Source: Prasinococcaceae sp. CCMP 1430 (taxonomy: Eukaryota > Plantae > Prasinodermophyta). From it: a stretch of 56,878 nt of DNA. The position numbers and the translations under genes are program-made. Position 1 is the stretch's first letter; the number at the start of each line of letters is the position of its first letter. The stretch lies in NCBI GenBank assembly GCA_013416795.1, contig RQSC01000014.1:1-56878 (forward strand), read 5' to 3'. The notes beneath the pieces are model-generated. The model searched no databases. It was not told where the DNA came from and saw only the letters and a list, made by a program, of their open reading frames with translations. This document shows, in pieces, positions 12,278 to 53,135 of the stretch.

Positions 12278-13564
12278 TCAGAGCTCCGAGCTGTCGTGCG
12301 CAGCCTCCGTGCCTTCGTCCTCCGCCTCGTCGGCTTCGAGCATGGCATCCAGGCGCGCGGCGCGCTCGTCGGCGGAGAGCTCCGCCTCCGCCTCCGCCTC
12401 CCCCTCCTGCCCCTCCTCCAGCAGGTCGCCAACCGAATCGGCGAAGATCTCCTCGTATGTCTTTTCCGAATCAGGCTTCTCCTCCTTCGGCTTCTCCGTC
12501 TCCTCAGCCTCCGTGGAGTTGGTGTCGGTGCCGTTTGAGATCTGCTTATTCGCCGTCGCCCAGTTCATGAATTCGTCGAAGGAGTTGCCAGCAGTGTCAC
12601 GCATCTCCTTGACCGCCTCCTCGTCGGGCGCGTTGAGGTAGAAGGCGACACCGCCGGCCACCAACAAGGCGAGCACGGTGAGGCGGCTCCACCACTTGGC
12701 AAGCCCCGCCTTCTTGTCGAAGCCGTAGCGCGGCAGAAGCGCGTCCATGAACGGCACGTCGTCGTTGAAGAGGTTGGGGAACACCCAGAAGCTGCGTCCG
12801 GTGGTAAGCCACACAACGCTGTAGACCAACAGCCGCACGAAGATGGTGGTAAATATGAGCGCCAACAGCGCCACGCAGACGTACACCACGCCGAACTTGA
12901 ACCAGAGCGGCGCGATCGGGTAGAGGCACATGAGCACCGGCGCGAGCACGAGCGCCGCGCCCTGCAGCAGACTCTTGAGCTGCACGGGGCGCACGTAGAC
13001 GAAGCCGTAGTACGTGTCATCATCGTCGATGTCGGCCGTCTCCCCCGCGCGCTTGCCGCTGTAGCTGACCGTGGTGGTCTGCGTGGCGCGGAAGAGCTGC
13101 TCCTTGTGCCACACATATTTGCGCGGCCAGCGCGGCAGCTTCTTCTTCCCCGGTGGCAGCTTGGTGTTGTGCCGGTCGAGGCGAAGGAAGAGCTTGTGCT
13201 GCATCATGCGCATGCATGCGACCGCGACCAGCGGCTTCAAACCGAGCCGTTCGGCGCCCCTCAGCTCTGTCTCGGTGAAGGCGTCTTCGCCCTCGGGCAG
13301 CTCGAGCTTCTGCCGCACGAGCTCTTCATGCTTCTCGATCCACTCGCGCATCTCCCGACCTTTGAACACGTCGAGGCGCGTGGCGTCGCCACCGACGAGG
13401 ACGCCGTCGCGCACGTCGATACCCTTGCGCCCACCCTCCATGCACTGCTCGCATAGCGAACGCAGCGCAAGGTACTTCGGATCGAGGTCGGCGTCAGCCT
13501 TGCCCACCGTGCCGTCCGCGTTGACGCCCACCGCCTCGCGCGCCTTCTGCATCGCCGCCTCCAT
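12278..13564 (-). CDS. SEC62: ER translocon subunit Sec62
   Basis: FKG..M..WI, FLRLDR, Y.FVY.RP, two TM helices around MCLYPIAPLWFKFGVVY, GRSFWVFPNLFNDD, acidic tail; single exon. Confidence 0.88.
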   Translation of the reverse strand: MEAAMQKAREAVGVNADGTVGKADADLDPKYLALRSLCEQCMEGGRKGIDVRDGVLVGGDATRLDVFKGREMREWIEKHEELVRQKLELPEGEDAFTETELRGAERLGLKPLVAVACMRMMQHKLFLRLDRHNTKLPPGKKKLPRWPRKYVWHKEQLFRATQTTTVSYSGKRAGETADIDDDDTYYGFVYVRPVQLKSLLQGAALVLAPVLMCLYPIAPLWFKFGVVYVCVALLALIFTTIFVRLLVYSVVWLTTGRSFWVFPNLFNDDVPFMDALLPRYGFDKKAGLAKWWSRLTVLALLVAGGVAFYLNAPDEEAVKEMRDTAGNSFDEFMNWATANKQISNGTDTNSTEAEETEKPKEEKPDSEKTYEEIFADSVGDLLEEGQEGEAEAEAELSADERAARLDAMLEADEAEDEGTEAAHDSSEL

Positions 13565-14257: not shown

Positions 14258-17200
14258 CTAAGCGCCCTTCGAGGCGTCCCCCTTGGGTTGTGCCGCCTTG
14301 GAATGGTGCACCCCGCCGCGGGCCGCTGAAATCGACACGGTCGCCTGAGGGATGCTGCCTCGTGCTGTTCCGCCCCTGATGCCAGTGAGAAAAGCAGCCT
14401 TGCTTCTCTTTTGGTCGCGCTTCTGCTCAACGGTGGCTCGCAGCATGGCGCCGTCGAGCACGGCGTCGCCGCTGCCCTCGCAAGCGAATGCTGCCGCCTG
14501 CGCTGCCGATGCGAGCTTGCCGATCTGGCGACCGCTAAAGCCCTCGGTGGCCTCCGCCGCGTCCATCAAGTCGGCGTCGCTTGCACATAGCACTGGAGGC
14601 TCGGGGCGGCCAAAGACGCGCCGTGCAAGCTTGTAAAGCGTGCTCCTCTTCGCATTCGCGGGGAAGAACTTGTGAAGCTGGCGGCGCAAGATCTCCAAGC
14701 GCTCGGCCTTGCGTGGCAAGTCGAAGAAGACCGCTTCGTCCATGCGGTCGAGCACGGCACTGTCGAGGTCTTCAGGCCTGTTGCTGGCCAGCACGAGCAT
14801 GACGGTGGAGCTCGCGCCGCCCGTGCAGTACAATAGCGCGTTGAGTGCGCTGCGTACACCCTCCGACATGCGCTCGCCGCCATCCACACCGGCGGCGTCG
14901 CGGCAGCGCAGGAAAGCGTCCGCCTCGTCGATGAAAAGCACGAGCCCCTTGCGCGAGCGCGACGCCCACTTGAACAAGGCGTGGATCTCTGTGACAGCCT
15001 CCTTGCCCATGGGAGCAACATCGCCGCCGGTCATCACGGCGTAGTCGAGCCCGCTGTGGCGCGCAAGCTCGAGCGCCGCCATCGTCTTGCCCGTGCCTGG
15101 CGTGCCGTGGAAGAGCACGTTTCGCATAGGCGCGCCACGACGCTGCGCGCTGGCTGCGGCGCGACCCAGCGTCGACAGTCGAGTCCCTAGCTCGGGAGAT
15201 AGCACAGCCTTCTCATGCGCCTCGAGACGACGCAGGAGCTTCCACGGGCGCCTCCAGTCGCCGCGACTTGTCTCGCGAAGCAGCCTGGGGGCGCCCATGA
15301 GCCACGCATGCAGAGCCCCGCCAAACGCCTTGAATAGCTCGCGTGCGGCAAAATACGCCGCCGCGAGCGCCGCGAGCGCACCCATCACGGCACGCAAAGT
15401 GTCGGGCTCGCTCACGAGCGCGCGCGAGCCGCTCGCAAGCGTAGCCAGGACCTCGCGTGTTGCTGCCACGATCGCTTCGCGCTGCGCGTCCGCCGCTACC
15501 TGCGCCGCTGCCACTGCGCGCTGCTTCTCGATTTCCTCGGTTTCGATCGCCTTGCGGATTGCAGCGTCGGCCTCCGCCTGCGCCTTGCCCTCCGACGCAC
15601 GCACGGATGCCTCGGCCTCTGCGTCGGCCTTGGCCTTGGCAGTCTCGAACTCAACCTCGGCCATGGTGCGCTTGGCATCCAAATCGACAGCCGAGCGCGC
15701 CCTTGCGCCTTCTGTCCTCAGCGCCTCGAGGCGTCGCTCGCTCGCTTCTCGCGCCGCCGTCTTGTCGGCATCTGCTGAGCGCTCCAGCTCCGCCCGAGTT
15801 TCGAGCCTGCGCTCTGCCAGCTGATGTTCATACTGCGCCAGCTGCCAAGAACAGCCGAGCTCGGCACTGCACTGCCCACCGTAATATGTTACGCGCAGCT
15901 CCGCGGGGTCGAGCAACGCATTGCCCGAGCGGTCTCGGACGGTGCTCGCCGCAAAGCTGATGGTGAGGATGCCCAGAGCCGCTGGTTCCACGGTGCCCCT
16001 GAAACGCATCGCACCACCCCCCTCCTCCTCGTCAAGAGACGCGATCACACCACCGCCGCCGCTCACCTCCAGTGCCCCCGGACCAATGCCTTCGACCGGC
16101 TCGTCACACTCAACCAGGATGTCAAACGGTCCGGACACGTCCTCCTCAGGGCCTGACAACGTGCAGCGCGGCGCGTGCTCGTCGCGCAACGCGCCGACAG
16201 CTGCCGGTGCCACCAGGCCCCCAACCGTCGTCACGACGTCGCCGGCAGGCCAGGCCGAAAGGACCACCAGCCTGCCGCTCGAGCGCTCGGCTACGATCAC
16301 ACGACCGAGCCGGTCGACCTCAAGCCCGGAGGGCTCAGCAATCCTTCCCTCGCCGATGCTGCCGGCGAATGTAAGGTCGCGCGCGTGGAAGACGGCCACG
16401 CGCCCGGCATCTGCATCAGCCACGTACACGTTGCCTTCCCCGTCCGTATCTACCGCCACCGGTCTCTGCAGCACGTCGCCTTCCGTGCCGAGCACGGAAT
16501 CCAGCGACATGTCGGCCGTGTGGAGCACGTGCACGGCCCGCGCGGTGGCGTCGCACACAAATACACGCCCGCGTGCATCAACCTCGATGCCGATGGGCTC
16601 CTGTAGCGCCTCTGAGGTGAATGACGCCTGGACCTCATGCTCGGCGTCAAGCCTGACCACGATGGCGCCGTCGCCGCCGACGCGTGCGATGTAGAGGTTA
16701 CCGTCATGTTCCTCAACGGCGCGCACGCCGTCGAAACCAGTGAGCGTGCCGGCGTTTGCGTGTGCGGCCGCGCCGTCGAACATACGGACAACGCCCGCCT
16801 CCGAGTCGGCGACGTACACCATGCCTGCTTCATCCACTTCCACAGACGCCGGCACCCCCGGCATCGAGATCTCTCCAAGGCGCTTGTAGCTCTCGCTGAG
16901 CAGGATTATGCGGCGCTGCTCGGGCTCTGCCACGTATAGGTTGCCGTTGGACACAGCCACTTCGATGGGATCGGCGGCTGCACTTGGGTTGCCGGCGGCG
17001 TCACTGCCAGCGCCAGCACGTAGGCCGAGACGCAACATTGAAGCACCCACGGACGGTGTTACCTGCACCTTGAAGCGGCTAGCTGCCGTGGCCTTCGTGA
17101 AGGATGCCGCCAGCGTCGCCATGCCCTCCAGCACCTCCACCGCGTTGGGCTCCATGTTTCGCACCACCTCTGAGAACGAAATCACGAGCTCGAACGAGTC

Positions 17201-18805
17201 CGCCTGTGCTCCGGCGGGCGCCGAGAGCGTCGCCTTCGGCGGCGTGCCATCGTACGTCACCATAAGTCTGTTCCCTTCCTTCGCATTCGCGTTGCCCCCT
17301 GAGTCGATGGCTGCGTCCGTACCGACATGAATGGAGAGCATGCCGTCGGCAGCGGGGTGCACAACGCACTCGTATCTGTCGCCAGCCTCGGAGCTGCGCC
17401 ACTTGGCCACAGTGCCACCAACGCCAGTGATGACAACCTTCGATGCGTCGAAACCGCTCACTGGCTCCGACCACTGGAACGTGACAGCGATCTCGTCGGC
17501 CACTATGGAGGACTTTGACTCGCTCCCATGGCGCGAGAGAACGACAGTTGGCGGCAGGTCGACCTCCCAACGCACGGGGCCAAGCAACGCCTCGTTGCCC
17601 GCCGCGTCGACGAGGCGCACCTCGAACTCATGCCCCCCATCAGAGAGGCGCGTCAGAAGGTAGGGCGACTCGCACGGCGTCCAAGCCCCGTCGTCAGCGC
17701 GGCAGGCTGCGGTAACGGCCACGCCTGCGGCGCTGTCGGCATCGGTCGCCCAATCGAATTTGGCGGCCGTGCTCATCGAACGCGCGGGCGGTGTTGTGCT
17801 GAACACCGCCGAGGGACCCACGGTCTTCACCACCCAGCGGTACGAGGGGGCGGTTGCCTTTGATTCCGCGTTGTCTGAGGCGTCCACCGCCCGCACAGAG
17901 AAGCTATGCTCGCCGTCGGCCAACCCCTCGTACCGCGCGGGGCTCGTGCACTCCTCTTCGTCAGCGCCATCAACGCTGCAAAGGAAACGCGCGATGCCCG
18001 ACGCGTCGTCCCGTCCGGAGAAGCCGAAGGCGACGGTCGAGGAGTTTGCATGCTGCGCTGGCCCTGACTTCAGGATGGTGACGGGCGCCTGCGTGTCGAG
18101 GCGGTGCTCGACGGTGAGCACCGGGCGCCAGTTGGCGTTGGCGTGCTCTGTCCCCGCCACGGCCGCGCGCGTCCAGCACGCCTCGTCCGCCGAAAACAGC
18201 TCGAAGCCAAGCATCGCCTCCGTGCTGTCTCCGCCCATATTTCTCCGGAGCGCTTCGGTGACGTCGAGAGTGTGGGTCACCCACACCCCGCGCTGCTGCG
18301 CGTCGACCTCGACGATGTCGAGCGGCTGACCGCGCTGCGGGCGCGACGCCCACGTCACGGCGCCGCCGCCGCCGCGCCCGGCGCCGAGCTCACGAGCGGC
18401 CGCCTCGGCGATTGACACGCGGCGCATGTCTTGGTCGAGGCGCCGCAGCGTGAGCGACAGCGTCGCGCGCGTCACGTCGAGGCTGGCGCCGTCCCTCCAG
18501 AGCGCGTCAAGGGAGAACAGCAGCCACGAGTGCGCGTCGCCGCCAGGTGCACCCGCGGCCGCACACCGCTGCCCGATCGGCAGCGTGTCGGCGGACGCCA
18601 CTGCGCGCATGGCATCAGCCATCGCGGCCTCGTCCGCCCAACCCGGTTCGGAGGCGACTCCAGCGGCCGCATCGATCGCCACGCGCTCATACCTCCATTC
18701 GCCTCGCGCTCCGCCCGCGAACGCAGCCACGAGCGCGGCGGCGAGCGCCGCGCGCGCCACCGCAGCCGCGCGCCGCGCGCCTGCGCGTGCCCGCGTCCGC
18801 GCCAT
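14258..18805 (-). CDS. Secreted-type multidomain protein (signal peptide, CBM96/DNRLRE-like, 5 Ig-like repeats, NHL propeller) fused to ATAD3-like coiled-coil/TM/AAA+ ATPase
   Basis: One uninterrupted frame. Signal MARTRARAGARRAAAVARAALAAALVAAFAGGARG. ATAD3 hallmarks: LLRETSRG, APMRNVLFHGTPGTGKTM, SGLDYAVMTGGDVAPMG, LFKWAS.SRKGLVLFIDEADAFL, RMSEGVRSALNALL, NRPEDLDSAVLDRMDE. Confidence 0.85.
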   Translation of the reverse strand: MARTRARAGARRAAAVARAALAAALVAAFAGGARGEWRYERVAIDAAAGVASEPGWADEAAMADAMRAVASADTLPIGQRCAAAGAPGGDAHSWLLFSLDALWRDGASLDVTRATLSLTLRRLDQDMRRVSIAEAAARELGAGRGGGGAVTWASRPQRGQPLDIVEVDAQQRGVWVTHTLDVTEALRRNMGGDSTEAMLGFELFSADEACWTRAAVAGTEHANANWRPVLTVEHRLDTQAPVTILKSGPAQHANSSTVAFGFSGRDDASGIARFLCSVDGADEEECTSPARYEGLADGEHSFSVRAVDASDNAESKATAPSYRWVVKTVGPSAVFSTTPPARSMSTAAKFDWATDADSAAGVAVTAACRADDGAWTPCESPYLLTRLSDGGHEFEVRLVDAAGNEALLGPVRWEVDLPPTVVLSRHGSESKSSIVADEIAVTFQWSEPVSGFDASKVVITGVGGTVAKWRSSEAGDRYECVVHPAADGMLSIHVGTDAAIDSGGNANAKEGNRLMVTYDGTPPKATLSAPAGAQADSFELVISFSEVVRNMEPNAVEVLEGMATLAASFTKATAASRFKVQVTPSVGASMLRLGLRAGAGSDAAGNPSAAADPIEVAVSNGNLYVAEPEQRRIILLSESYKRLGEISMPGVPASVEVDEAGMVYVADSEAGVVRMFDGAAAHANAGTLTGFDGVRAVEEHDGNLYIARVGGDGAIVVRLDAEHEVQASFTSEALQEPIGIEVDARGRVFVCDATARAVHVLHTADMSLDSVLGTEGDVLQRPVAVDTDGEGNVYVADADAGRVAVFHARDLTFAGSIGEGRIAEPSGLEVDRLGRVIVAERSSGRLVVLSAWPAGDVVTTVGGLVAPAAVGALRDEHAPRCTLSGPEEDVSGPFDILVECDEPVEGIGPGALEVSGGGGVIASLDEEEGGGAMRFRGTVEPAALGILTISFAASTVRDRSGNALLDPAELRVTYYGGQCSAELGCSWQLAQYEHQLAERRLETRAELERSADADKTAAREASERRLEALRTEGARARSAVDLDAKRTMAEVEFETAKAKADAEAEASVRASEGKAQAEADAAIRKAIETEEIEKQRAVAAAQVAADAQREAIVAATREVLATLASGSRALVSEPDTLRAVMGALAALAAAYFAARELFKAFGGALHAWLMGAPRLLRETSRGDWRRPWKLLRRLEAHEKAVLSPELGTRLSTLGRAAASAQRRGAPMRNVLFHGTPGTGKTMAALELARHSGLDYAVMTGGDVAPMGKEAVTEIHALFKWASRSRKGLVLFIDEADAFLRCRDAAGVDGGERMSEGVRSALNALLYCTGGASSTVMLVLASNRPEDLDSAVLDRMDEAVFFDLPRKAERLEILRRQLHKFFPANAKRSTLYKLARRVFGRPEPPVLCASDADLMDAAEATEGFSGRQIGKLASAAQAAAFACEGSGDAVLDGAMLRATVEQKRDQKRSKAAFLTGIRGGTARGSIPQATVSISAARGGVHHSKAAQPKGDASKGA

Positions 18806-19584: not shown

Positions 19585-22269
19585 ATGGCGGAGGGGGGCG
19601 GCGTGGGAGCAGGTCCGGCGGGCGCGTTTGCAGTCCGAATGGCGACCAAGGGAGCAGTGTACGTGGTGGACGCCGATGAGCACGCGGCAGGTGTCCGAGG
19701 CGCACCATCGCAGGCAACCTCGAGCTCGCTGCACGCCGCAAGGCTGGCGATCGTCGTCGCGGTCATGGCAGCGGCTGCTGCCTGGGCCGCAGGGTACGCC
19801 CCCGATGTGGCGGTGGCAGCAGCAACCGCCGCTTTCGCGTTCGCGGTCGTGCCTCTCATCGCGGGCCTTCGCAGGCTTCCCGACACCATCGGCTTCGGCG
19901 ATTCGCGACCGCGAAAGCGACGGCGACGCGCGTATCGCTTCAAGGTATCCGCACCACTGCTCGCGGGCGGCGCCGATGGCAGCTCCGACAACGCAAGTGC
20001 GCTGCGCGACGATGCATCTGTGCTGGCGACGTGCGACAGCTGGCACCCGCTCGGCGCAGCAGCGAGGCACTGGTGCGCGACGTTGCTCGAGAAGTCGCCG
20101 TCGGCGCCGTCGCGATCTGTGGAGCTGCGCCTCGTCGTGATACACAAGCTGCCGCAGGACCACCCCGACGCAGACCCGGACGCCTTCGGGATGGGTGCCG
20201 AGGGCACAGCCGACGTCGGATTCCCGCCACCGGTCGGAGTCACGCAGGTGGACACGGACACCTCGCCGTCCGACAGCAATTCTGCCGGTGCGACCCCTGA
20301 GAAGGGCACAAAAGCAGAGGATGCGAAGCCTGCATCGATGGTTGCGACAGACGCGGTGGACGTTGCGGACCCAGCGGCGCTTACGGCGATGTTGCGCGGC
20401 GAACCCGGGGTGCCACTCGTTGGTATCGCTTATGTGCAGGTGCTCAAGGGCGTGCGCTGCGACACTATCGTCGGGTCCGAGGCTGCCGCGCGCACCGCGC
20501 ACGCAAGCAGCCGTGGCATTGGCGGCAGCCGCCGCAGCGATGCGATTGCCGTGCTGGAGCTCCCGCTCCTACAGCTTTCAGGCGTCTTCCTGGACGGTGA
20601 GCGCCTCGACGAACCCGCGCAGGCAGCTATGCTGCCGCGCATCGCGCGCGCGGTACTCGCACAGCTCGCTGGCGCCGGCGTCGGCTGCGTGGTCGTGCGC
20701 GCACCCACATCGCAGCAGGCACCGACGTGGCCAATGGCACCCTCGGCGTACGCCGAGTCAGCGCTCATCGGTGCGGGCATGGTGCCAGTAGCGACGATGA
20801 GCGCGCCGGGGGTCGTGATGCCTGTTGGGCCGCGCGCCGCCGGCGTCGAGCGTCCCCGTAGGGTGCGGGCGCCCGGCCGCGGCGCCGCGGAAGGGGCCAC
20901 TGGCTCGATGCAGCGCACCCTGAGCACCCTTGGCGCCAGTGCGCGCCGTCGCCGTCGAATTCGGCGAGCGCTCGACGCGTTCGGGGCCGGCGGAGGGTCT
21001 GTGCGCTGGGCTGGGGGCGGCGCCGAAAGCACGGGGGACGGCGAGAGCAGGGACGTTCGGGCGGCGACTGCTCAGCGCCTCGCCCAGCTTTGGCAGGCAA
21101 CCATACGCAGCAAAGGAATAGGGAGTGGCATTGGGGCACGAGTCACGAGCGGCGTCGCGACTGAAGGCAGTCAACCTCCGGGCGTGCATGGTCCCCGCGT
21201 GCCATCAGAGATGCCGGCCGAGCTGGCGCGAGCGTGGGATGTCGGCGCGCCCTTCTTCAGTGCGCTGCTAGAAGCGCCAGCGTCATCGACGTTGCGCGTT
21301 GCCATCGCTTGCGATGGGAAATCGCACGCGCGTGCGTTTGCGCTCGCGCTCGGCCGAGGCTCCGCCGAGCCGTGGAGCGGAAGAGAGGGCCCGCTCGCGC
21401 TGCGCATGGGCGCCGCTGACACCTGTGGTGACTCGGCGAGGAGGGCACGCGACGCACTGACCGCGATCCTGTGCGACACGGCGAGACGTGTGGGCGCGGC
21501 GGGCGACTGGGGATTACCCGCAAGCACAGACGCCTCCGCGGAGGAAGGGACGGCCGAGGCACCTTCAGGCAGCGCGTCAACTTACCCACCCATCGAGTCG
21601 GAGACTTGGTTCGTAGACGTTGGGTGCGGCGGCTACGAGATGAAGCGCGCACTGCAATGCAAGCGCGTGGACTCGGTGGTGTATGCGCTCATCGACGGCG
21701 CGGCGCGCGCGGTGCCCGGCCGCGTGCCCTCGGAGCTCGAGGCACCCATTGTGCTTCGGCCCCACCGTCTGCCCGAGGTGGCATCGAGGCTGCCCGAGTG
21801 GAGTGTGCTGGAGAGCGACGAGGCGCGCAACAAACGAGAGGCTCGCGAGGTGCTCCACGCGCACCGCGAGCGCGAGTTCTACCGCGTCGGAGCGGGCTTG
21901 GGCGCCGGGATGTCGCGACATGAGATTCGCAGGCAGCTGCGCAAACGTCGCAGGATGCTGGCGCGCGCAGCTGCCGCGAGCGCTCGGCCCCGCGCTGCGG
22001 ACGATGGCAGCACCGCCTCGCCTGCAAAGCAAGACACTGGTGAACCGAGCGACGGCAGCGACGCCTTTGCCGACAGCGCAGACCACGCGCGTCAAGCGAG
22101 TGACGACGAGCGCAATGCGTCGTTCGAGGACGCCGCGAGCGACGTGGACGGCGCGGAGGTGCGCGAAGGCGTCGACGCGTTGGAGCCGCCCGAAGTCGGC
22201 TCCGCCAGCAGCGAGGACGGGGATCGCGAGGAGGTCTTTCTATCCCCTGAAACGCAGCGCACTGTGTAA
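19585..22269 (+). CDS. Large membrane-anchored hypothetical protein with a degenerate FemAB/Acetyltransf_6-like GNAT region
   Basis: 894-codon ORF, two N-terminal hydrophobic segments; PLVGIAYVQ, RRRRIRRAL, PFFSALL, RAFALAL, WFVDVGCGGYEMKRALQC are reminiscent of tandem-GNAT FemAB-like proteins. The ORF is well supported, the family call is weak. Confidence 0.5.
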   Translation: MAEGGGVGAGPAGAFAVRMATKGAVYVVDADEHAAGVRGAPSQATSSSLHAARLAIVVAVMAAAAAWAAGYAPDVAVAAATAAFAFAVVPLIAGLRRLPDTIGFGDSRPRKRRRRAYRFKVSAPLLAGGADGSSDNASALRDDASVLATCDSWHPLGAAARHWCATLLEKSPSAPSRSVELRLVVIHKLPQDHPDADPDAFGMGAEGTADVGFPPPVGVTQVDTDTSPSDSNSAGATPEKGTKAEDAKPASMVATDAVDVADPAALTAMLRGEPGVPLVGIAYVQVLKGVRCDTIVGSEAAARTAHASSRGIGGSRRSDAIAVLELPLLQLSGVFLDGERLDEPAQAAMLPRIARAVLAQLAGAGVGCVVVRAPTSQQAPTWPMAPSAYAESALIGAGMVPVATMSAPGVVMPVGPRAAGVERPRRVRAPGRGAAEGATGSMQRTLSTLGASARRRRRIRRALDAFGAGGGSVRWAGGGAESTGDGESRDVRAATAQRLAQLWQATIRSKGIGSGIGARVTSGVATEGSQPPGVHGPRVPSEMPAELARAWDVGAPFFSALLEAPASSTLRVAIACDGKSHARAFALALGRGSAEPWSGREGPLALRMGAADTCGDSARRARDALTAILCDTARRVGAAGDWGLPASTDASAEEGTAEAPSGSASTYPPIESETWFVDVGCGGYEMKRALQCKRVDSVVYALIDGAARAVPGRVPSELEAPIVLRPHRLPEVASRLPEWSVLESDEARNKREAREVLHAHREREFYRVGAGLGAGMSRHEIRRQLRKRRRMLARAAAASARPRAADDGSTASPAKQDTGEPSDGSDAFADSADHARQASDDERNASFEDAASDVDGAEVREGVDALEPPEVGSASSEDGDREEVFLSPETQRTV

Positions 22270-22515
22270 GTGGTGTGTTCTCATCGCTACTCGTGCGTTG
22301 CCCTTACAGCAGCTGGCGCAGGATGGTCTCTCTATATCGTTTTGTACACGGCGCAGAGGGAGTGGTCCGCATTCCCATGCTCCTCCGGTGGATGAGGGGA
22401 TGGAGTCGCCCACGCGCAGTCCCCTCCGCACCGCTGCCTTCCTGGATTTGCCTCTCGTAAAGTTATGACGACTGTGCTGCGCGCTCGCTGCTCGCGTGCT
22501 GCTGTGCTCGCCTGC

Positions 22516-23586
22516 TTAGCAGTCGTCAATGGCGAGGAGGCTGAACGGATTGTGCATGTCCGGCCTGCCGGGGTCGTCATCGTCTTCATCCTCTTCGGTG
22601 TCGTCCTCATCGTCCTCCCAGCTGTCCGCGGTGGGCTTGGGCTTCAAGACGCCCGAGGGCGTGCGGATCGCTTTAGGGGGCTGCCCCGGGGCGACGACGG
22701 CCTTGGACGACGGGATGCCGTGCGTTGGCATGACACTTTTCCCGGCAGCGATGTGCTTCACGAGCGCGTCGGTGTTGGCCTTGAGCTCAGCGCGGCGCCT
22801 CTCATTTTCCTCCCTGCGTGCCTTGCGTTCGTTGTCGAGCCTCTCGAGTTCGAGCAGCCTCTCGGACGTGTTCGCCGGCTTGGCGTCGCCAAAAGGGTTG
22901 GGCCTGCCGCACGCAGGGCTGGACTGCGCGCCGATTGCGCCTGCTTGGGCGGAGCGCGGCGCCAGATTGAGCTTAGGCCTCATCGACGATGCAGGCGATG
23001 CCGTCGGCAGCGACGTCGGCGGGGCGGACGAGGGCGGCCCGGAGGCCATCCCCTGCTGGAGCGTGGACACCGGGCGCACGGGCGGCGCGGAGGGCATGTC
23101 CGGGCGCACGGTCACCGGCCGACCGCGCACGACCGTTCCGTCCTTGCGCAGCGCCTTGAGGAGCAACTCGTGATTCTCGAAGTCGATGAAGATGCCTCGC
23201 AGGCGGCCCGAGTCGCGGTGCCTGATGGGCCGCATGTCGGTGATGATCGTGGGCGCAAACACCATCTCCACCTCCTCGGGAGTCACCGAGTGGGGAAGGT
23301 TGCTCACGAATGCGGTGACGCACGTGGGGGATACTCCCCCCGCGGCGACGCGGTGCGCGCTCCGGCTGTTGTAAGCCCCGCCTCCAGAGTAGGCGGGCGG
23401 CGCAGGGGCCGCGGGGGCGTCGCCGTGGCTCGTGAACCGCCTGGGACCGTCGCGCGGGTATTGGCCGGGGTGCGGTCTGCCGCCGCCGTCGCCCTGGCCT
23501 GAGTGTTGGCGGTGCATTGGCTGCGGCGGCATGAAGCCGCTCGCCATGCGCACGTCGCCGCTCGGGCGCGCTTCCACCTGCATCAT
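22516..23586 (-). CDS. EIF4B: eIF4B/eIF4H-like RRM protein
   Basis: RRM (TAFVSNLP..., GRLRGIFIDFE, LRKDG..VRGRPVTV), then RPKLNLAPRS and RPNPFGDAKP motifs and a charged coiled-coil; ATG 23586; TGTAA at 22308-22304. Confidence 0.75.
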   Translation of the reverse strand: MMQVEARPSGDVRMASGFMPPQPMHRQHSGQGDGGGRPHPGQYPRDGPRRFTSHGDAPAAPAPPAYSGGGAYNSRSAHRVAAGGVSPTCVTAFVSNLPHSVTPEEVEMVFAPTIITDMRPIRHRDSGRLRGIFIDFENHELLLKALRKDGTVVRGRPVTVRPDMPSAPPVRPVSTLQQGMASGPPSSAPPTSLPTASPASSMRPKLNLAPRSAQAGAIGAQSSPACGRPNPFGDAKPANTSERLLELERLDNERKARREENERRRAELKANTDALVKHIAAGKSVMPTHGIPSSKAVVAPGQPPKAIRTPSGVLKPKPTADSWEDDEDDTEEDEDDDDPGRPDMHNPFSLLAIDDC

Positions 23587-24008
23587 ACTAGACGGCACTT
23601 GAGGGAGGGGCAGCGGTCTGCTGCGTCCGTTCGCCGCACGCGCAGTCGAGGTGCGCCTCGGACGGCGTCAGGGCGCGCTCACCCCTGTTCCCTCTCCCTC
23701 CCTGTTCTCGCCGAGCGAGGCGCGGCCGGCCTCGCGCTTCGCACCGCACCGAGCCAATCCTCCCGGTGACGCCGCTTGCACCACCGCTCCGCGGCCAGAG
23801 CGCCCACTCTGTCCCGCGCCCCGCCGTGGGAGCCGCGCGCGCGACAAAAAAAAAACGTCGCCTCGCGCGCGCGCGCGCGCGCCGCCCGCCCGTCCGCCCC
23901 TCGTCCTCCTTTTCGTCGTCGTCGTCGTCCTCCTCCCCCTTCCCCCTCTCACAACCGCCGGCTCAGCCGCGCAGCGCACCCCCTCTGGCCCCTCCCCCCC
24001 ACGCGCAG

Positions 24009-24135
24009 GGCGGCCGCCGCGGGCTACCGCCGCCAGCGCGAGCTCATGCTGCGCGGCGCCGCCGAGCTCTGCGAGGGCTACGCGCGCTCCTGCGCCCAGC
24101 GCGCCGAGGAGCTTGCCGCCGCAGCCGCGGCGTGA
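24009..24135 (+). other. Orphan terminal-exon-like segment
   Basis: Pyrimidine-rich tract + CGCAG acceptor at 24008, then AAAGYRRQRELMLRGAAELCEGYARSCAQRAEELAAAAAA*; no upstream exon found. Confidence 0.3.
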
Positions 24136-24196
24136 GCGCGGCCCCGGGAGACCCAGGAGGCCCACACGCCCACGCGCAGGCTCGCACCGCGTACAG

Positions 24197-24370
24197 CACA
24201 GGCAGAAAATGCCATCGCGGCCCGTGCCTTCGATTTCGGCGAGGAGCCTCTCGTACACGCCGAGGTCGTCGCGCGCCGCGGCGAAGCCTGGCACGAGCAC
24301 GACGTCCCACGGCGTGGGACGGGTGCCGTACGTGCGAGCGGACGCATCGCCGCACACGACGCGCGCGCAT
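24197..24370 (-). pseudogene. Isolated coding-like fragment (frameshifted after ATG)
   Basis: VVCGDASARTYGTRPTPWDVVLVPGFAAARDDLGVYERLLAEIEGTGRDGIF has the locus codon bias; the ATG at 24370 is out of frame across a (CG)n run; no downstream exon found. Confidence 0.3.
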
Positions 24371-24493
24371 AAACATTTAACCCTATTTCCAAACCTAACC
24401 CAAAATACGCGGTCTGACGTGTCACGTGCGCACGTCAAAACGCATGCGAGCCCGTCCGGTAAGGATTTGGATAAGGATTTGGATTTGGGGGCG

Positions 24494-24590
24494 GTGTGTG
24501 TGCGCGTGCGCGCGCGTGCGGCGTGGCGTGTGCGTGTGTGCGTGTGCGTGTGTGCGTGTGTGTGTCGTGTGTGTGTGTGTGTGTGTGAGC

Positions 24591-24639
<49 letters not shown>

Positions 24640-24773
24640 TGCGTGTGTGTGTGTGCGCGCGCGCGTGTGTGTATGTGTGTGTGTGCTGGCGCGCGTGTGT
24701 GTGGGACTGTGCGTTGCGTGTGTGTGTGTGTGCGCATGTGTGTCTGCGTGTGTGTGTGTGCGAATGCGCGCGT
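24494..24773. repeat. Compound microsatellite: (TG/CG)n - (AC)23 - (TG/CG)n
   Basis: Imperfect TG repeats 24494-24586, pure AC repeat 24592-24637, imperfect TG repeats 24638-24773. Confidence 0.95.
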
Positions 24774-25217
24774 GTCCGGGCTCGCGCCGCGCAGCCTTAT
24801 CCGCAATCCGCGGCGGCCGCCGGTGCGAACGCGAAGAAATCCCGCGCGCCCCTTCTTTTTTTTTCGCGCGCGCGCCCGGCTTCGGTCGAGCGCGATCGAA
24901 ACCGGCGCCGCGAAAATCGCCGGCCGGCCCGGAACGCATCGGAGCGCGCCCCCGAAAACGCGGAAGGAACGGCGTGGGTTGCACGACCTTTTTTTCCTTT
25001 TTTTTTGCCCTGCGTTTTCATCCGGGCGCGCGCGCGCGCGCGCGCCTTTTTTCCGCGAGCGCTCTGGCAGATCTTTTGCGCATGCCGCGCGAGATCGCGC
25101 CGCGCCACACAGCGCGCGCCTGCTGCCCGCCCAGCCTCACCCGCTCCCACCCACTTCTTTCTCCCTCTCTCTTGGCGGCTCTCTCCGCCCCTCCCCCCCC
25201 CCTCCCCCCTCACCTAG

Positions 25218-25864
25218 GAGCGATGATGACCTCGGGCGTGGCGACGGCGCCGCGCGCCGCGGCGCGCGTCCGCGAGCGCGCTCGACGTCGACGCGCTCAT
25301 GCACAACAGCTCCTTCCTGGGCTTCGCTGCCGTCATGGTGTGCTGGGCGGGGCCGCAGTCGCTCGGTATGATGGTGCTGGCGCGCAAGGAGGAGGACGGC
25401 CGGGAGCTGCTCGCATCCAAGGTGCGCGCTCTAGCTAGCAGGTGTTGGTGGACGCCACGCCCACCGCACCACGCCAACGACCCCGTCGAAGGCCGCGCAA
25501 ACGCGCCGCGCGTCGATGGGCTGACCCACGCTCGCCCGCGCGCGCCCGCAAACGTCCCACGCGCGCGCACGCTCGCAGGGCGTAAGCACGGACGACATCC
25601 CCAAGGGTGACTGTACGTGGCGCCAATGCCCGCCTCCTCAAGACGCACGCCATCGCGCGCGCACCCGCCAACCAACCGCCACCGCGACGTGCGAGGACGC
25701 GCACGCACTTGCGCACTGCCCAGTCGCGCTGCGCGCTCGCGGCTGCTTGGTGGATGTCTCATCGCTGACGGCAGGCGCGCGCCCACGCTCTCGGGTGAAC
25801 AGGGGGGCGGGTCCGCACGCGCCTCAAGGACAACGGGCTGCTGCCAAGCCAGCAGAAGAAGTGA
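25218..25864 (+). pseudogene. Two-exon gene remnant or error-ridden small membrane-protein gene
   Basis: Acceptor CCTAG 25217; [50 protein letters not shown] then donor GTGCGC 25422; CTGAC branch + GCAG acceptor 25774; second exon has in-frame TGA at 25796 before RVRTRLKDNGLLPSQQKK*. Confidence 0.3.
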
Positions 25865-29586: not shown

Positions 29587-31536
29587 TTACGCAGGCGCCA
29601 CCGCAGCCACCCCGCCCCCACCTTGGGTCTCCTCCGCCGCCGCGCCGCCATCAGCGCCCGCGCTGACCGCCTCCTCGCCCTTCTCTGACTCGACGACGTC
29701 CGCCAGCGTATGCGTGGCGCCGATCCAGTTGCGCACCACGAAGCAGTACACCACCACGATGGCGGGCAAGGCGCCGGAGAGGGACCCGAGGAGGATGAGC
29801 AAGCCCTGCTGCAGCATGCTGCCGCCGCTCTTGCCAAACTGTGCGCCGACCACGTCGATGGCCGCTTTACCCTTGGTGCGGCTCTCCGAGTCGAGACCGA
29901 TGTACACCATCTCCTCAGCAGGTTTGAAGAGCGCGAACTTGGCCGCGCGCAGGAAGATGTATCCGGCGGCTCCCAGCGCGGTGATGTAGCCCAGCATCTC
30001 CATGGAGCCAAGCGCGGGCACAGCGCGCCCGAGCCAGCCTGCCGGATCGGCGTGCACGGCGTGCCATCCCGCGCTTAGCAGCAGGAAAGCCGCGCCGCAC
30101 CACATCATGAACATCGGCGTCACCAGCGCGGCCACGCGCCAGCCCATGCGCGTGAAGATGATCGGCGACAGCACCATGAGCAGCGCCGTGCACGCGCCCG
30201 TCGCGCTCGAGATGTCGCCCATCACGCGACTGAAGTCCTCGGGGTTGGGGAACATCATGTGCAGGTGGCCCTTCACGCTCACCTGAAGCAGCGCGTACGC
30301 GATGCCCTGGCCCACAGCCAGCACTGCCAAGCAGCGCAGCTCGACCTTCTGCGCCAGCACGGCCAGGCTGTCCTTGAGGCTGAGCTTTTCCTTCTCCTTC
30401 GGCTCCTCCTCGTCGCCGGCCGTCGCCGGCTCGCTTCCGGCGGGTTTCGTGGTCTCCGCGGGAATAAGCGCATCTCCCGCCGCCTCCTCGACCTCCTCCA
30501 GGCGCGCCGTCGTGGCGGGCACCTTGACGGGTGTCTGCAGGCGGCACGCCTGCCGCGTGCTGACATACCTGTGGAGGGCCATCGCGCCCACGCCCGCGAC
30601 CAGCACGCTCGCCATAAGGATGGAGAGCTGCGAGGACCACTCGACGCCGGCGCTGGACAGGTGGCGCAACTCGTAGCCCGCGAGCATGACGCTCAGGTTG
30701 GCGCCCACGCCGAAGAGCGGGTAGAGCACCTCTGCCTCGCGGATGGAGCACAGCTCGTTGGCCATTCCCCAGAAGAGCAGCGATATGCACACGTCGCCCC
30801 ACAGCTCGGCCATGACGTAGAACAGGCTGTAGGTCCAGTTGCGCACGACGGCGATGAGGCCGCTGAAGCCCGCGGGCAGCACCGTAAGCAGGTAGTCCGC
30901 GAAGCCGTGCGGGTGCAGCACCGTCGCTGTGTACGGGTACACAAAGGCGAACGCTGCGAAGAACGCCGTGAAGGAGCCTACGATTGTGTAGAAGAGCTTC
31001 TCTCGCGACATGCGGCTGCTCAGGTAGGCGAACACCACCAGGAACACCACGCTGGCGGGGAGCACGCCGTACACCGTCAGGAAGGGGATCACGTCCGCAC
31101 CGCCGCCCAGCGCGGTGATGACTAACGTGTCCTTCGTGTTGTCCACGATGGTGTTGGCGAACGCCAGGAAGAAGAAGCAGCAGGACAGCGGGATGAACTT
31201 GCCCCACATGCCGGAGAGCTCGGCGAGGAGGTTCTTGTTTGGTTTTTGGCTGGCGTCCGGTGTCGCGACGGGCTCAGCCGAAGAGGAGGGCTGCGTGTCG
31301 TCTGCCCCACTGCCGCTGCCGCCAGCAGCCGCGGCGGGCGGCGCCGCGCGCCCCCTGCGTAGCCTCCTCGCCCTGCCCAGAGCGTCGGGAGCGGGCTGGG
31401 GCATGGCCCGTCGACGCGCGGCCGGCCCCGCGAAGCGTCCTCCATGGACCTCCGCCGAGTGTCCTGTTTGCGCCGCCGCCGCAGCAGCCACCGCTCCGCC
31501 GGGGCACCCAGCCCTCGGCCGCACGCGGCGCAGCGC
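29587..31536 (-). CDS. NTT: Plastid ATP/ADP antiporter (TLC/NTT family); start at ATG 31404 or within the gap
   Basis: KFIPL..FF..F..TI...TKDTLVIT, AD.IPFL, RNWTYSLFYVMAELWG.V..SLLFWG.AN, YPLFG.GAN, KFALFKPAEEMVYI.LD.E..TKGKAAIDVV...GKSGG. Confidence 0.95.
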   Translation of the reverse strand, partial: ALRRVRPRAGCPGGAVAAAAAAQTGHSAEVHGGRFAGPAARRRAMPQPAPDALGRARRLRRGRAAPPAAAAGGSGSGADDTQPSSSAEPVATPDASQKPNKNLLAELSGMWGKFIPLSCCFFFLAFANTIVDNTKDTLVITALGGGADVIPFLTVYGVLPASVVFLVVFAYLSSRMSREKLFYTIVGSFTAFFAAFAFVYPYTATVLHPHGFADYLLTVLPAGFSGLIAVVRNWTYSLFYVMAELWGDVCISLLFWGMANELCSIREAEVLYPLFGVGANLSVMLAGYELRHLSSAGVEWSSQLSILMASVLVAGVGAMALHRYVSTRQACRLQTPVKVPATTARLEEVEEAAGDALIPAETTKPAGSEPATAGDEEEPKEKEKLSLKDSLAVLAQKVELRCLAVLAVGQGIAYALLQVSVKGHLHMMFPNPEDFSRVMGDISSATGACTALLMVLSPIIFTRMGWRVAALVTPMFMMWCGAAFLLLSAGWHAVHADPAGWLGRAVPALGSMEMLGYITALGAAGYIFLRAAKFALFKPAEEMVYIGLDSESRTKGKAAIDVVGAQFGKSGGSMLQQGLLILLGSLSGALPAIVVVYCFVVRNWIGATHTLADVVESEKGEEAVSAGADGGAAAEETQGGGGVAAVAPA

Positions 31537-32119
31537 NNNNNNNNNNNNNNNNNNNNNNNNNNNNNNNNNNNNNNNNNNNNNNNNNNNNNNNNNNNNNNNN
31601 NNNNNNNNNNNNNNNNNNNNNNNNNNNNNNNNNNNNNNNNNNNNNNNNNNNNNNNNNNNNNNNNNNNNNNNNNNNNNNNNNNNNNNNNNNNNNNNNNNNN
31701 NNNNNNNNNNNNNNNNNNNNNNNNNNNNNNNNNNNNNNNNNNNNNNNNNNNNNNNNNNNNNNNNNNNNNNNNNNNNNNNNNNNNNNNNNNNNNNNNNNNN
31801 NNNNNNNNNNNNNNNNNNNNNNNNNNNNNNNNNNNNNNNNNNNNNNNNNNNNNNNNNNNNNNNNNNNNNNNNNNNNNNNNNNNNNNNNNNNNNNNNNNNN
31901 NNNNNNNNNNNNNNNNNNNNNNNNNNNNNNNNNNNNNNNNNNNNNNNNNNNNNNNNNNNNNNNNNNNNNNNNNNNNNNNNNNNNNNNNNNNNNNNNNNNN
32001 NNNNNNNNNNNNNNNNNNNNNNNNNNNNNNNNNNNNNNNNNNNNNNNNNNNNNNNNNNNNNNNNNNNNNNNNNNNNNNNNNNNNNNNNNNNNNNNNNNNN
32101 NNNNNNNNNNNNNNNNNNN
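31537..32119. other. Assembly gap (N)
   Basis: Run of N. Confidence 1.
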
Positions 32120-32675
32120 CGCGGCGGCCGCGGAGCGCGCCGAGGGGGGCTCGCGAAGGGAGGCGCTCGCCGCGGCGGCGCTTGCGGCGCTCGTGGCTGC
32201 ACCGCCGCCACCCGCGTCTGCGCTCGGCTTCAAGAAGCAGCTCAGGAAGAAGGGCATCGACGCCGTGCCGCTCGACAAGTACTCCGAGGTGTCCGGCTCC
32301 CCGGGCCTGCTGTACTACGACCGCACGCCTGGCACGGGCGAGCCCGTCAAGGTGGGAGAGCGCGTTGCGGTGCACTTTGATGTCAAGCTCGGCCGACTCA
32401 CATGCTTCAGCTCGCGCATTGGCAGCGGCGTGACGGGCGGCGTTCCGTACGGATTTGACGTGGGCACCAGCAACCTCGGCCTGGTTCTCAAGGCGCTCGA
32501 CCTCGGCACCGAGGGCATGCGCGTCGGAGGCCAGCGCACACTGCGCGTGCCCGCGGAGTACGCATACGGCGACAAGGGCTACGGCGAGATTCCGCCGGGC
32601 GCGACGACTACCATCGACATCGAGCTGCTCAGCGTCAAGGTCAATCCCCTCACCAGGCAGAGGACGGGCTCGTAG
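32120..32675 (+). CDS. FKBP16-4: Thylakoid-lumen FKBP-type PPIase, FKBP16-4-like; 5' end in gap
   Basis: SRREALAAAAL...ASA TAT signal; GERVAVHF, SSRIGSGVTGGVPYGFDVG, LKALDLGTEGMRVGGQR, AYG.KG..EIPPGAT..IDIELLSVK. Confidence 0.85.
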
Positions 32676-51346: not shown

Positions 51347-52739
51347 TCAGGTCGAGCGCACTAGAGCGCGCACTTCGGCGTCTTCGCTGGACGCGAGCAC
51401 GGCCCTCACCGCCTCCCAGTTGTCGATGACGCTCTCCTGGCTCTTGGCGGCCCTGACGCCTCCGCGCGCCTCGCGGTGCTCGACGAGCGTGTTGCCAATC
51501 ACTTCGGCAGAGGGCTCCAGGCCCACCGCGCGCATGAGGTCGCCCCACGCCGCCACGCTCGTGCGCATCGCCGCGCCTGAATCGTCGTACTCAAATGCGA
51601 AGAGGTCCTCGGTGAAAACCGGCGCAGCGAGCTGCTCCTGATCCTTCCAGAGCGCGCGCGCGTGCTCCTCGTATCCGAGGCGGCGGCGAGTCCACCACGC
51701 CAAAGTCTCCTCGAGCTTGGCGGGATTCAGGTAGGCGCGGGTGACAACCTGCGCGTACGCGTGCGCGCGCGCGCGTCATTCGTGAGCGGGACGTGTGCGT
51801 GCGGTAGATGCGGGGCCGCGCAGGCGTAGCCATGCCGCAATGCTGGTCAGCACACCGGTCAATTGGTCCGGCCTGCAGGGAGCTGCGCGGGGGCGTGCAC
51901 AAAGCGGGGCCCTGCCCCGACCATCAACGCACCGGGTTGCCACTGGCGGCCGCCGCTCGCCGCTTATAGCACAGCGTGGGGTCCGTCCCGTTTTCGGTGA
52001 CAACCTCCCCGATGGGGCTGTTCTTCGCGAGGAAGCAGTCGCGAACGAAGCACGTCAGCATGTCCAGGACATTCCTCCGCCACACGAAGACAGCGCGCGC
52101 GCCCGTGTTGGCAATGACGGGCGACAAGACGGCGTCGCCCGCGTACATGGCGTTCGCGCCCTCATCGGCGCGGAGCTCGAGCTTCTGCAGGAGCATGAGC
52201 CCTTGGCTGGTCGCCTCCTTATACTGCGCCATGATCGCGTCCTCCATGGTTGCTTTGCCGCCCGCTGGCGGCCCGTGCTCCCTGTAGTAGGCGTTTGTCT
52301 CCGGGCGCAATTCCTCAAAGTACAGGTCCGCCGCCGGATGGCCGTGCGCCGCGGTCAGAGCGCGCGCGAGCTTAATGGTGGCGGTGGACCCGCTGCATCC
52401 CTCCATGATGAGCAAAGCGGGATGATGCACGCTCGCAGTGCCGGCGCCTGCTGCCGCCTGCGCGTCGCCCGCCGTCTCGTTGTTGACCTTATCTACGCGG
52501 CTCATTGCGGTGCGCTGGGAGTCGAGCGCGTCTGCCTGCTCCCGCAGCCGCGCGGCCACGCTCGCGACCAGCACCTGCCAGTCTGCTTGCGAGCCCGACT
52601 CGCCAAGGGACCTGCCTGCGGCCATGATTTGCCTCGACAGCGCGCTGTGGCGCGCCCCTGCGGCCGGTGCGGCTGCTGTCAGCAGCCCCGCCAGCGCGAG
52701 CGCGCGCATCGCCGCGGCGGCCGCCGCCCAAGCCCGCAT
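51347..52739 (-). CDS. Secretory-pathway sulfotransferase-like protein (Stf0-like); exons 52739-51933, 51748-51347
   Basis: Signal anchor; LLIMEGCSGSTAT (5'-PSB-like), VFVWRRNVLDML (3'-PB-like), EDL, SVIDNWEAV; phase-0 intron GTGCGT 51932 to GCAG 51749. Confidence 0.65.
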
Positions 52740-53135
52740 GTCCCCGCTGCGAAGAGACCCCAGCCAGGGGGTGAGGCCGGCGTCGGGAAGGCTCCGTGCG
52801 CGGCCTCCGGAGTGACGCGGGGTCGCTGCCCCCGCTCCCCCTCCCCCATTTTCCCCTCGTCGCCCCCCCCCCCCTCCACCCCGCGGTGGCAGCTGCGACG
52901 GCCGCCGCCGCCCCGCGCGCTCACGGCGGTTGGCGCGCGCGCTCAGTGCAGGCCGGAGGGAGGGGGAGGGGAGGGGCGGGCGTGGAGGGCGTGGCGCCAG
53001 AGCGCGCGCGTGCGCGCGCGCGTCGGGTGGCGCGTCTCGAGTTCGAGGGGAAGGAAACGACGGCGCGCGCGCGCGCGTGCGCGCGCGCTCGTGTGCGTGT
53101 GCCGCGCGGGGAAGGGCGCGGACGCGGCGACACCG

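Follow-up and report, generated by a model that had tools for sequence, protein, structure and literature searches.

ATAD3 is the closest described relative of the gene reported here. The coiled coils of ATAD3 form an oligomerisation scaffold in the mitochondrial intermembrane space, its N-terminus reaches the outer membrane and its ATPase lies in the matrix, while its mechanism is still unclear (PMC10419812, PMC13249166). Our literature search returned ATAD3 only as a mitochondrial protein of animals, plants and Plasmodium, with no signal peptide or ectodomain described; one apparent match proved to be a misprint for ADAT. A second point of reference is Torsin A, which is termed endoplasmic reticulum (ER)-resident in a passage of bioRxiv 10.1101/567099. 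The DNA examined here, called the window, is a stretch of 56,878 nucleotides from Prasinococcaceae sp. CCMP 1430 (contig RQSC01000014.1) with a guanine-plus-cytosine (GC) content of ~68%. Its minus strand carries one intronless gene in which an ATAD3-type ATPase is joined to a large array of domains typical of surface proteins. An original prediction, made from the sequence alone, had described this gene as an ATAD3 paralogue fused to a secreted ectodomain, and the present analysis followed it up.

The best overall explanation, to which we assign a probability of roughly 0.68, is that the gene encodes a green-lineage ATAD3 paralogue whose N-terminus was swapped for a signal peptide and a ~940-residue domain array, and that the product is a secretory type I membrane protein acting as an oligomeric tether. 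The fusion itself is real and conserved across green algae, and is not an artefact of assembly or annotation. The gene lies in a single open frame that runs from 19279 to 14258 on the minus strand and is made up of the following features.

14261-18805, minus strand: fused ATAD3-type gene, one intronless gene of 1515 residues
18805, minus strand: start codon (ATG) of the fused gene, codon 159 of the long open reading frame (ORF)
18701-18805, minus strand: signal-peptide-like segment, residues 1-35, hydropathy peak at 13-31
18098-18610, minus strand: CBM96-type beta-sandwich, residues ~66-236, with conserved Cys81 and Cys210
17546-18097, minus strand: two OmpL47/Big_13-type immunoglobulin (Ig)-like repeats, residues 237-420
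16952-17545, minus strand: two Big_12 bacterial Ig-like domains, residues 421-618
16202-16951, minus strand: six-bladed NHL beta-propeller, residues 619-868
15881-16201, minus strand: third Big_12-like Ig domain, residues 869-975, a beta-sandwich in the structural model
15836-15880, minus strand: fusion junction, G-G-x-C-x5-C-x-W-x-L-x2-Y, residues 976-990
15416-15850, minus strand: coiled-coil stalk, residues 986-1130, a homologue of ATAD3's second coiled coil
15326-15394, minus strand: membrane helix, residues ~1138-1160, homologous to the inner-membrane segment of ATAD3
15119-15325, minus strand: juxtamembrane linker with P-x-L-[LV]-R-E-T-S-R, residues 1161-1229, RETSR at 1177-1181
14261-15118, minus strand: AAA+ ATPase domain and lid, residues 1230-1515
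14258-14260, minus strand: stop codon of the fused gene

The C-terminal ~541 residues align at ~40% identity over ~90% of their length with canonical ATAD3 of plants and green algae. The nearest proteins of ordinary length are named ATAD3 proteins from the same groups (272-287 bits), and solved Cdc48, p97 and FtsH chains match in the AAA core only, at no more than 112 bits. Of 260 Protein Data Bank (PDB) sequences with a match, the 60 best included no solved ATAD3 structure; the best match there was Cdc48/p97, again in the AAA core only. The Pfam AAA domain covers residues 1230-1362 (80.9 bits, E 1.4e-22), and the catalytic motifs are intact: Walker A (GTPGTGKT, 1234-1241), Walker B (VLFIDE, 1289-1294) and ASNRP...DR (1340-1354), with Asn1342 as sensor-1 and with Arg1354. 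These motifs are invariant across the fused family and canonical ATAD3. The 145 residues of the stalk contain no proline and three glycines and are rich in alanine, glutamate and arginine. Pfam ATAD3_N matches residues 988-1176 at 35.9 bits against a cut-off of 25, and only over profile positions 102-264 of 265; the FDPxxLERGAKALRE start of a full ATAD3_N domain is absent, the first ~100 profile positions being replaced in the fused protein. Homology to canonical ATAD3 begins at QLAQYEHQLA, just after the junction, with an aligned start of QLAQYE(D/H)(E/Q)LA inside ATAD3_N. The junction motif itself is present only in fused members and is the most conserved short motif of the protein, with G976, G977, C979, C985, W987, L989 and Y992 invariant throughout the fused family.

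On the other side of the junction, the modules could be assigned individually by profile and by fold. An AlphaFold model of the N-terminal module was built on five family sequences (predicted local distance difference test, pLDDT, 68.5, a moderate confidence). Its best structural matches were 8wab_B, a chondroitin-sulfate-binding module (Z 13.4, root-mean-square deviation 3.0, 146 residues aligned), and 7vbo_A, an alginate-binding module (Z 12.9), followed by the next-best structure at Z 9.1; overall, the deviation from 8wab and 7vbo was 3.0-3.2 across 146-147 residues, at 14-16% identity. The first Ig-like repeats are matched by the NCBIfam OmpL47-type barrel at residues 255-319 (46.4 bits, cut-off 40) and weakly by Pfam Big_13. 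They carry Cys pairs 276/286 and 368/378, invariant in nine family sequences, and share 30-34% identity with tandem units of bacterial-type repetitive proteins that have the same Cys-x9-Cys pair. Pfam Big_12 is matched in two stretches (E 4.9e-18, 65.7 bits, threshold 27), and the propeller by Pfam NHL (45.7 bits, threshold 20), by NCBIfam ScyF NHL and weakly by TEN_NHL. A model of residues 612-982 (pLDDT 88.8) shows an all-strand domain followed by an Ig-like sandwich, and Foldseek matched it to the six-bladed NHL propellers of Pizza6, TRIM71, Brat and PknD with target template-modelling scores of 0.65-0.84. The top Foldseek match for the combined propeller and Ig region was 1l0q, the propeller and PKD pair of an archaeal surface-layer protein. 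The third Ig domain is matched by Pfam Big_12 at the equivalent position in orthologues P0011 (864-942) and P0017 (712-792).

Two word-based searches of limited sensitivity found no whole-ectodomain relative beyond the fused family, the only such match being the family member P0002; because of that sensitivity the absence is weak evidence. Matches to bacterial-type proteins were obtained at the level of single modules, with 10-26% coverage, and outside the family the ectodomain modules have their closest relatives in bacterial surface-type proteins. The structural claims of the original prediction hold for the most part. The single intronless frame of ~1,500 residues was recovered as 1515 residues, every module boundary was right within a few codons, and the two Ig/Fn-like repeats, the two Big-like repeats, the propeller and the third Big-like repeat were borne out by profile matches, Cys pairs, orthologues and models, as was the bacterial type of the ectodomain modules. 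The predicted coiled coil, transmembrane segment and AAA domain, in which both Walker motifs (A and B) and the arginine finger are intact, are likewise all present. The N-terminal module had been called CBM96/DNRLRE-like: the model supports the CBM96-like part by fold, although not by Pfam threshold, and no NCBIfam or Pfam model of a DNRLRE domain matched at E up to 0.1.

The C-terminal 541 residues were searched against 1.8 billion representative sequences. Long proteins were matched from residue 1 of this query, and the fused orthologues among them and the members of their clusters include the following.

Chlorokybus atmophyticus (P0011): 1463 residues
Chloropicon roscoffensis (WZN66332.1, 'AAA domain-containing ATPase'; Chloropicon ids P0019 and P0168): 1495 residues, plus 96 near-identical metagenome copies
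Tetraselmis astigmatica: 1304-1315 residues, MMETSP transcripts
Tetraselmis sp. GSL018: 1228 residues, MMETSP transcript
Tetraselmis striata (P0313): 1321 residues
Two uncultured marine lineages: P0002 and P0013

The full-length relatives carry the same Pfam domains in the same order and are colinear with the window protein at 29-36% identity; P0002 is 37% identical to it from end to end in pairwise alignment (BLASTP, 33% over 96% of the length). The Tetraselmis proteins (family ids P0165, P0166, P0183 and P0313) are without the CBM96-type module. In the Tetraselmis MMETSP data the junction motif lies inside single transcript ORFs, indicating that one message encodes both halves in those species. 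A Tara metatranscriptome fragment (P0164) held the ATPase part only and did not cover the junction. Since members were found in Chlorokybus, Tetraselmis, Chloropicon, the deep-branching, GC-rich Prasinococcaceae sp. CCMP 1430 and uncultured marine lineages, the family appears to date from an early stage of green-plant evolution and to have disappeared afterwards from land plants. The architecture had been put forward as one not known to be described. We found no paper that describes it, and it appears new to the literature; however, its sequences already sit in public databases without a name (WZN66332.1 is an example), and it is not unique to this genome.

The start codon was placed at ATG 18805 on the strength of three results. 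Coding-type GC periodicity (GC at second codon positions ~0.55-0.66, at third positions 0.8-0.9) begins at about codon 180 of the long ORF, and upstream of this ATG all three codon positions are at ~0.8 GC. Residues 37-126 can be aligned with relatives, and W37, G78, C81, R121 and R122 are invariant. An independent gene call on a 99%-identical contig (P0327) gave the identical 1515 residues. Two other starts were rejected. The upstream ATG 19174, chosen by one gene caller (P0001, 1638 residues), adds sequence with neither codon periodicity nor homology, and the orthologues begin at the signal peptide. An internal start at Met127 would halve the CBM96-type fold and lose residues that are conserved in orthologues. 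The latter start is that of the genome's public gene model (P0326, EukProt, 1389 residues), which is identical to residues 127-1515 and joins the ectodomain and ATPase halves in one protein. Comparison with a strain contig (L001, 99.3% identical) showed 0.48% base differences and no indels in the coding region, against 1.6-1.9% differences in the flanks, with four indels in the upstream flank; the coding region is thus conserved three to four times better than its surroundings.

The relation to ATAD3 was examined in a careful maximum-likelihood tree of 54 sequences, with no non-ATAD3 outgroup. The fused proteins form one clade (support 100/100), as do the canonical green ATAD3 proteins of land plants, Myrmecia, Pyramimonas and Prasinoderma (99/100). 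The two clades are sisters with moderate support (91/80). Judged from this tree, the fused gene is an ATAD3 paralogue and not the canonical copy, as the original prediction held. The grouping of its AAA part with ATAD3 that was to be checked is borne out by this sister position and by the named ATAD3 proteins that are its nearest matches of ordinary length. A canonical ATAD3 is carried by Prasinoderma coloniale (P0145); a GC-rich canonical ATAD3 (P0022) is 46% identical to P0145, and P0311, a member of the same cluster, comes from another sample. The safest statement is that the fused clade represents a distinct ATAD3 paralogue older than the chlorophyte/streptophyte split.

Where the protein resides was judged mainly from the family. 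All six complete N-termini have a signal-peptide layout, with n-, h- and c-like regions followed by a conserved Trp. The best 10-residue hydropathy is 2.5-3.5 for the five scored in this way, and the sixth, from Tetraselmis striata P0313, has a 19-residue hydropathy peak of 1.91 at residues 8-11. The Tetraselmis N-termini have a poly-Leu core and that of Chlorokybus contains no Arg, and both read unambiguously as signal peptides by composition and layout. In the window protein, residues 1-35 comprise an Arg-rich n-region, an uncharged Ala/Leu/Val stretch and GGARG, followed by the conserved Trp. Beyond the N-terminus, residues 1136-1158 form the sole hydrophobic peak outside the globular domains, and the corresponding segment is more hydrophobic in the orthologues (1.7-2.0). 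The 40 residues after the membrane helix hold 9 Lys and Arg against 4 Asp and Glu. Invariant Cys pairs are found in the outer part of the protein (276/286, 368/378 and 979/985, plus C81/C210 in the N-terminal module), and the AAA part has no invariant cysteine. The signal-like starts, the restriction of Cys pairs to the outer part, the surface-protein domain types and the positive charge after the helix make a type I membrane protein the most likely reading, its ATPase being cytosolic and its ectodomain and coiled-coil stalk extracellular or lumenal.

Several observations weigh against this account as a whole. On the isolated N-terminal module, Pfam CBM96 (PF24517) reaches only 20.9 bits (E 3.5e-4), under its cut-off of 26, and the match in the Chloropicon orthologue is also below threshold at 20.3 bits; carbohydrate binding is putative. 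The public gene model P0326 begins at Met127 and omits the signal-like segment together with the first half of the CBM96-type module (18427-18805, minus strand), for which reason database architecture searches would miss the secretory signal. The 22 substitutions between strains divide into 10 synonymous and 12 non-synonymous, a sample too small to say much on selection. In the careful tree, the position of the fused clade as sister to canonical green ATAD3 has only moderate support (91/80), and an earlier quick tree had put the clade elsewhere. Of the first 18 residues of the window N-terminus, 7 are Arg (8 of the first 35), and an Ala-rich stretch follows. Taken alone, this N-terminus could resemble an organelle presequence as much as a signal peptide; the N-termini of canonical plant ATAD3 are also Ala-rich, with hydropathy 2.0-2.4. 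The signal peptide placed at 18805-18701 by the original prediction stands as a signal-like segment shared with all complete orthologues; its own sequence is ambiguous, and the case for a signal peptide in the window protein rests on the orthologues. Finally, the hydropathy peak at residues 1136-1158 is a moderate 1.56 in the window protein.

The most serious alternative concerns origin, and we regard it as rather unlikely. The fused clade may be the green form of an older, widespread group of signal-peptide ATAD3-like proteins, and not a green-lineage duplicate of canonical ATAD3; where the fused proteins have the Ig/NHL array, many members of that group would have an autoprocessing domain of the Peptidase_S74/MYRF type. 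Many ATAD3-like proteins from other organisms do have signal-like starts, and several match Peptidase_S74 or MYRF_ICA. The half of the quick tree in which the fused clade fell also held signal-peptide ATAD3-like proteins, and an approximately unbiased (AU) test did not reject placing the two together (log-likelihood difference 5.9, p 0.33). Against this, the careful tree sets the fused clade beside canonical green ATAD3, and no S74 or ICA match occurs in the fused proteins.

The wider set of such proteins is an observation in its own right. Among the best 150 relatives are many ATAD3-like proteins of 640-1310 residues, from metagenome or Logan assemblies, that have a signal-like start and an extra N-terminal part before ATAD3_N, helix and AAA (P0105, P0033, P0046, P0109, P0099, P0039, P0023, P0081, P0072, P0141, P0076, P0056, P0316, P0029 and P0107). 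P0105 matches Peptidase_S74 (E 5.5e-8) and P0099 matches MYRF_ICA (E 5.7e-7). By their sequences, these proteins may form an undescribed non-mitochondrial group that is commoner than the literature suggests.

Two further alternatives concern location, and both are less likely than the type I topology. The first, which we consider improbable, is that the protein is mitochondrial: the Arg/Ala-rich N-terminus would serve as a presequence or anchor the protein in the outer membrane, and the Ig/NHL array, placed on the mitochondrial surface or in the intermembrane space, would extend the ATAD3 portion reaching toward the outer membrane. Besides its arginines, the window N-terminus has no acidic residue for 35 residues, the starts of canonical plant ATAD3 are also Ala-rich and moderately hydrophobic, the whole ATAD3 core beginning at the second coiled coil, with its membrane helix and RETSR, is kept, and all characterised ATAD3 proteins are mitochondrial. 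However, the N-termini of the orthologues are classic signal peptides and not amphipathic presequences, and the added domains, with their invariant Cys pairs, are of types found in extracytoplasmic surface proteins of bacteria and archaea. A signal peptide would also leave the ribosome more than 1100 residues before any internal ATAD3 import signal, so that co-translational ER targeting should come first.

More improbable still is that segment 1136-1158 fails to act as a stop-transfer sequence and that the whole protein, ATPase included, resides in the ER lumen or is secreted. The modest hydropathy of this segment in the window protein would allow it, and Torsin A offers a precedent in the passage cited above (10.1101/567099), where an AAA+ ATPase is ER-resident. 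The segment is nevertheless homologous to the accepted membrane anchor of ATAD3, is clearly hydrophobic in the orthologues and is followed by a positively charged stretch, and the ATPase part lacks conserved Cys against three or four invariant pairs outside it. The suggestion that two neighbouring genes were run together, or that the frame is open by chance in GC-rich DNA, is already refuted as far as sequence evidence reaches: high GC gives many spurious long ORFs (36 of at least 100 codons overlap the region) and a further 158 codons upstream of the true start are free of stops, but Pfam domains occupy the frame end to end, colinear relatives with the highly conserved junction occur in at least seven lineages, Tetraselmis transcript ORFs cross that junction, and P0326 also joins both halves.

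In the type I reading, the initial ~100 positions of ATAD3_N, which take in the FDPEALERG start and approximately the first coiled coil, have given way, along with everything N-terminal to them, to a predicted signal peptide and a domain array. This array consists of a CBM96-type module, a Cys-paired set of two Ig domains, two Big_12 domains, an NHL propeller and a third Big_12 domain. We propose the following course of events. The signal peptide would direct the chain into the ER, and the ATAD3-type hydrophobic helix would halt its transfer. The AAA+ domain would then stay in the cytosol, and the ectodomain with the ~145-residue stalk would lie extracellularly or inside a secretory compartment. 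Oligomerisation through the coiled coil and the AAA ring, as in ATAD3, is a less certain step. If fully helical, the stalk would measure ~20 nm and keep the ectodomains away from the membrane, where the CBM-type module and propeller may bind a polysaccharide or glycoprotein of a wall, theca or scale layer. By analogy with ATAD3, the protein would then be an ATP-dependent oligomer that tethers the membrane to a polysaccharide-rich outer layer. The coupling of adhesion or ligand binding to ATP-driven oligomerisation that the original prediction raised is, like its secretory targeting and outward topology, a prediction made from sequence.

A bolder proposal, which we hold to be possible rather than probable, is that green algae, from those that branch deepest up to an early streptophyte, retain an AAA+ machine at the cell surface. 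Beneath the plasma membrane, a hexameric ring of the ATAD3 type would be connected by one helix and a ~20 nm coiled-coil stalk to six lectin/Ig/propeller arms lying in the wall or scale layer, and ATP hydrolysis would be mechanically coupled to the extracellular matrix, or matrix binding to the ATPase. Together with the other signal-peptide ATAD3-like proteins, it might form an unnoticed non-mitochondrial branch of ATAD3. A conserved paralogue with a swapped far end shows that the ATAD3 core is a portable module for spanning a membrane and a gap, and it provides a second, independent context for asking what the ATAD3 ATPase does. If the predicted topology is true, an AAA+ motor would here be coupled directly to a binding domain that is extracellular or lumenal, a rare arrangement that would bear on how green algae with scales or walls make or sense these coverings.

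Directly downstream of the fused gene lies an ORF for the translocon subunit Sec62 (12278-13564, minus strand; Pfam E 5.6e-21). This neighbour is also found in the 99%-identical strain contig L001; a metagenome contig with an orthologue (L002) has other neighbours (ankyrin and DUF4457). Because the neighbours differ between the window and L002, genomic context gives no functional hint, and the adjacency of Sec62 is probably a coincidence. Upstream are three plus-strand ORFs of 894, 345 and 595 codons (19585-22269, 22465-23502 and 23651-25438), the first divergent from the fused gene, none of which had a Pfam match at E up to 0.001. Farther along, an 874-codon ORF (29587-32211, minus strand) encodes a full TLC ATP/ADP transporter domain (Pfam E 3e-119) and sits where GC is lowest in the window, at 0.53 for 30-32 kb compared with ~0.68 elsewhere; at 26-28 kb GC falls a second time, to 0.575. 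A 1094-codon ORF at 51795-55079 on the plus strand contains a diphthamide-synthesis domain (Pfam E 3.8e-65) with its best stretch at residues 795-905, which suggests a long N-terminal extension, an unrecognised intron or an upstream open frame.

Set beside known systems, the fused protein shares parts with several. The signal-peptide ATAD3-like proteins (for example P0105, P0033, P0046 and P0099) resemble it in their signal-like start, added N-terminal part and ATAD3_N/helix/AAA core, and differ in that the added part is an autoprocessing chaperone-type domain or contains no recognisable domain. The CBM96 modules 8wab and 7vbo have the same beta-sandwich fold as the modelled N-terminal module; theirs is attached to a lyase, whereas here it is attached to a membrane ATPase and its binding is putative. 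Archaeal and bacterial surface-layer or adhesin proteins such as 1l0q likewise place an Ig-like domain after a propeller, but they lack a cytosolic motor, and in the fused protein a coiled coil and a membrane helix link the array to an AAA+ domain. Torsins are AAA+ proteins that enter the secretory pathway by an N-terminal signal sequence, as is predicted here. In contrast, the torsin ATPase belongs to another AAA+ clade and is lumenal, in the ER or nuclear envelope, whereas for the fused protein a cytosolic ATPase is predicted, with the added domains alone being lumenal or external.

In predicted topology, the fused protein is also like PknD of Mycobacterium tuberculosis, which has an outward six-bladed NHL propeller as its sensor, one membrane helix and a cytosolic nucleotide-using enzyme; its structure, PDB 1rwi, was matched in both chains by the propeller model, at 26-28% identity. 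The enzyme of PknD is a kinase and not an AAA+ ATPase, and the ectodomain described here is far larger and stands on a long coiled-coil stalk. With ATAD3 itself, both human ATAD3A and the plant proteins, the fused protein shares the second coiled coil, the membrane helix, P-x-L-V-R-E-T-S-R, the AAA domain with Walker A, Walker B and Arg, and the lid, and the predicted orientation, with the N-terminal part across the membrane and the ATPase on the near side, is also alike. It differs in that a predicted signal peptide, followed by CBM, Ig and NHL domains of ~940 residues in all, stands where ATAD3 has the first ~100 positions of ATAD3_N, and its predicted site is the secretory pathway or cell surface, not the mitochondria.

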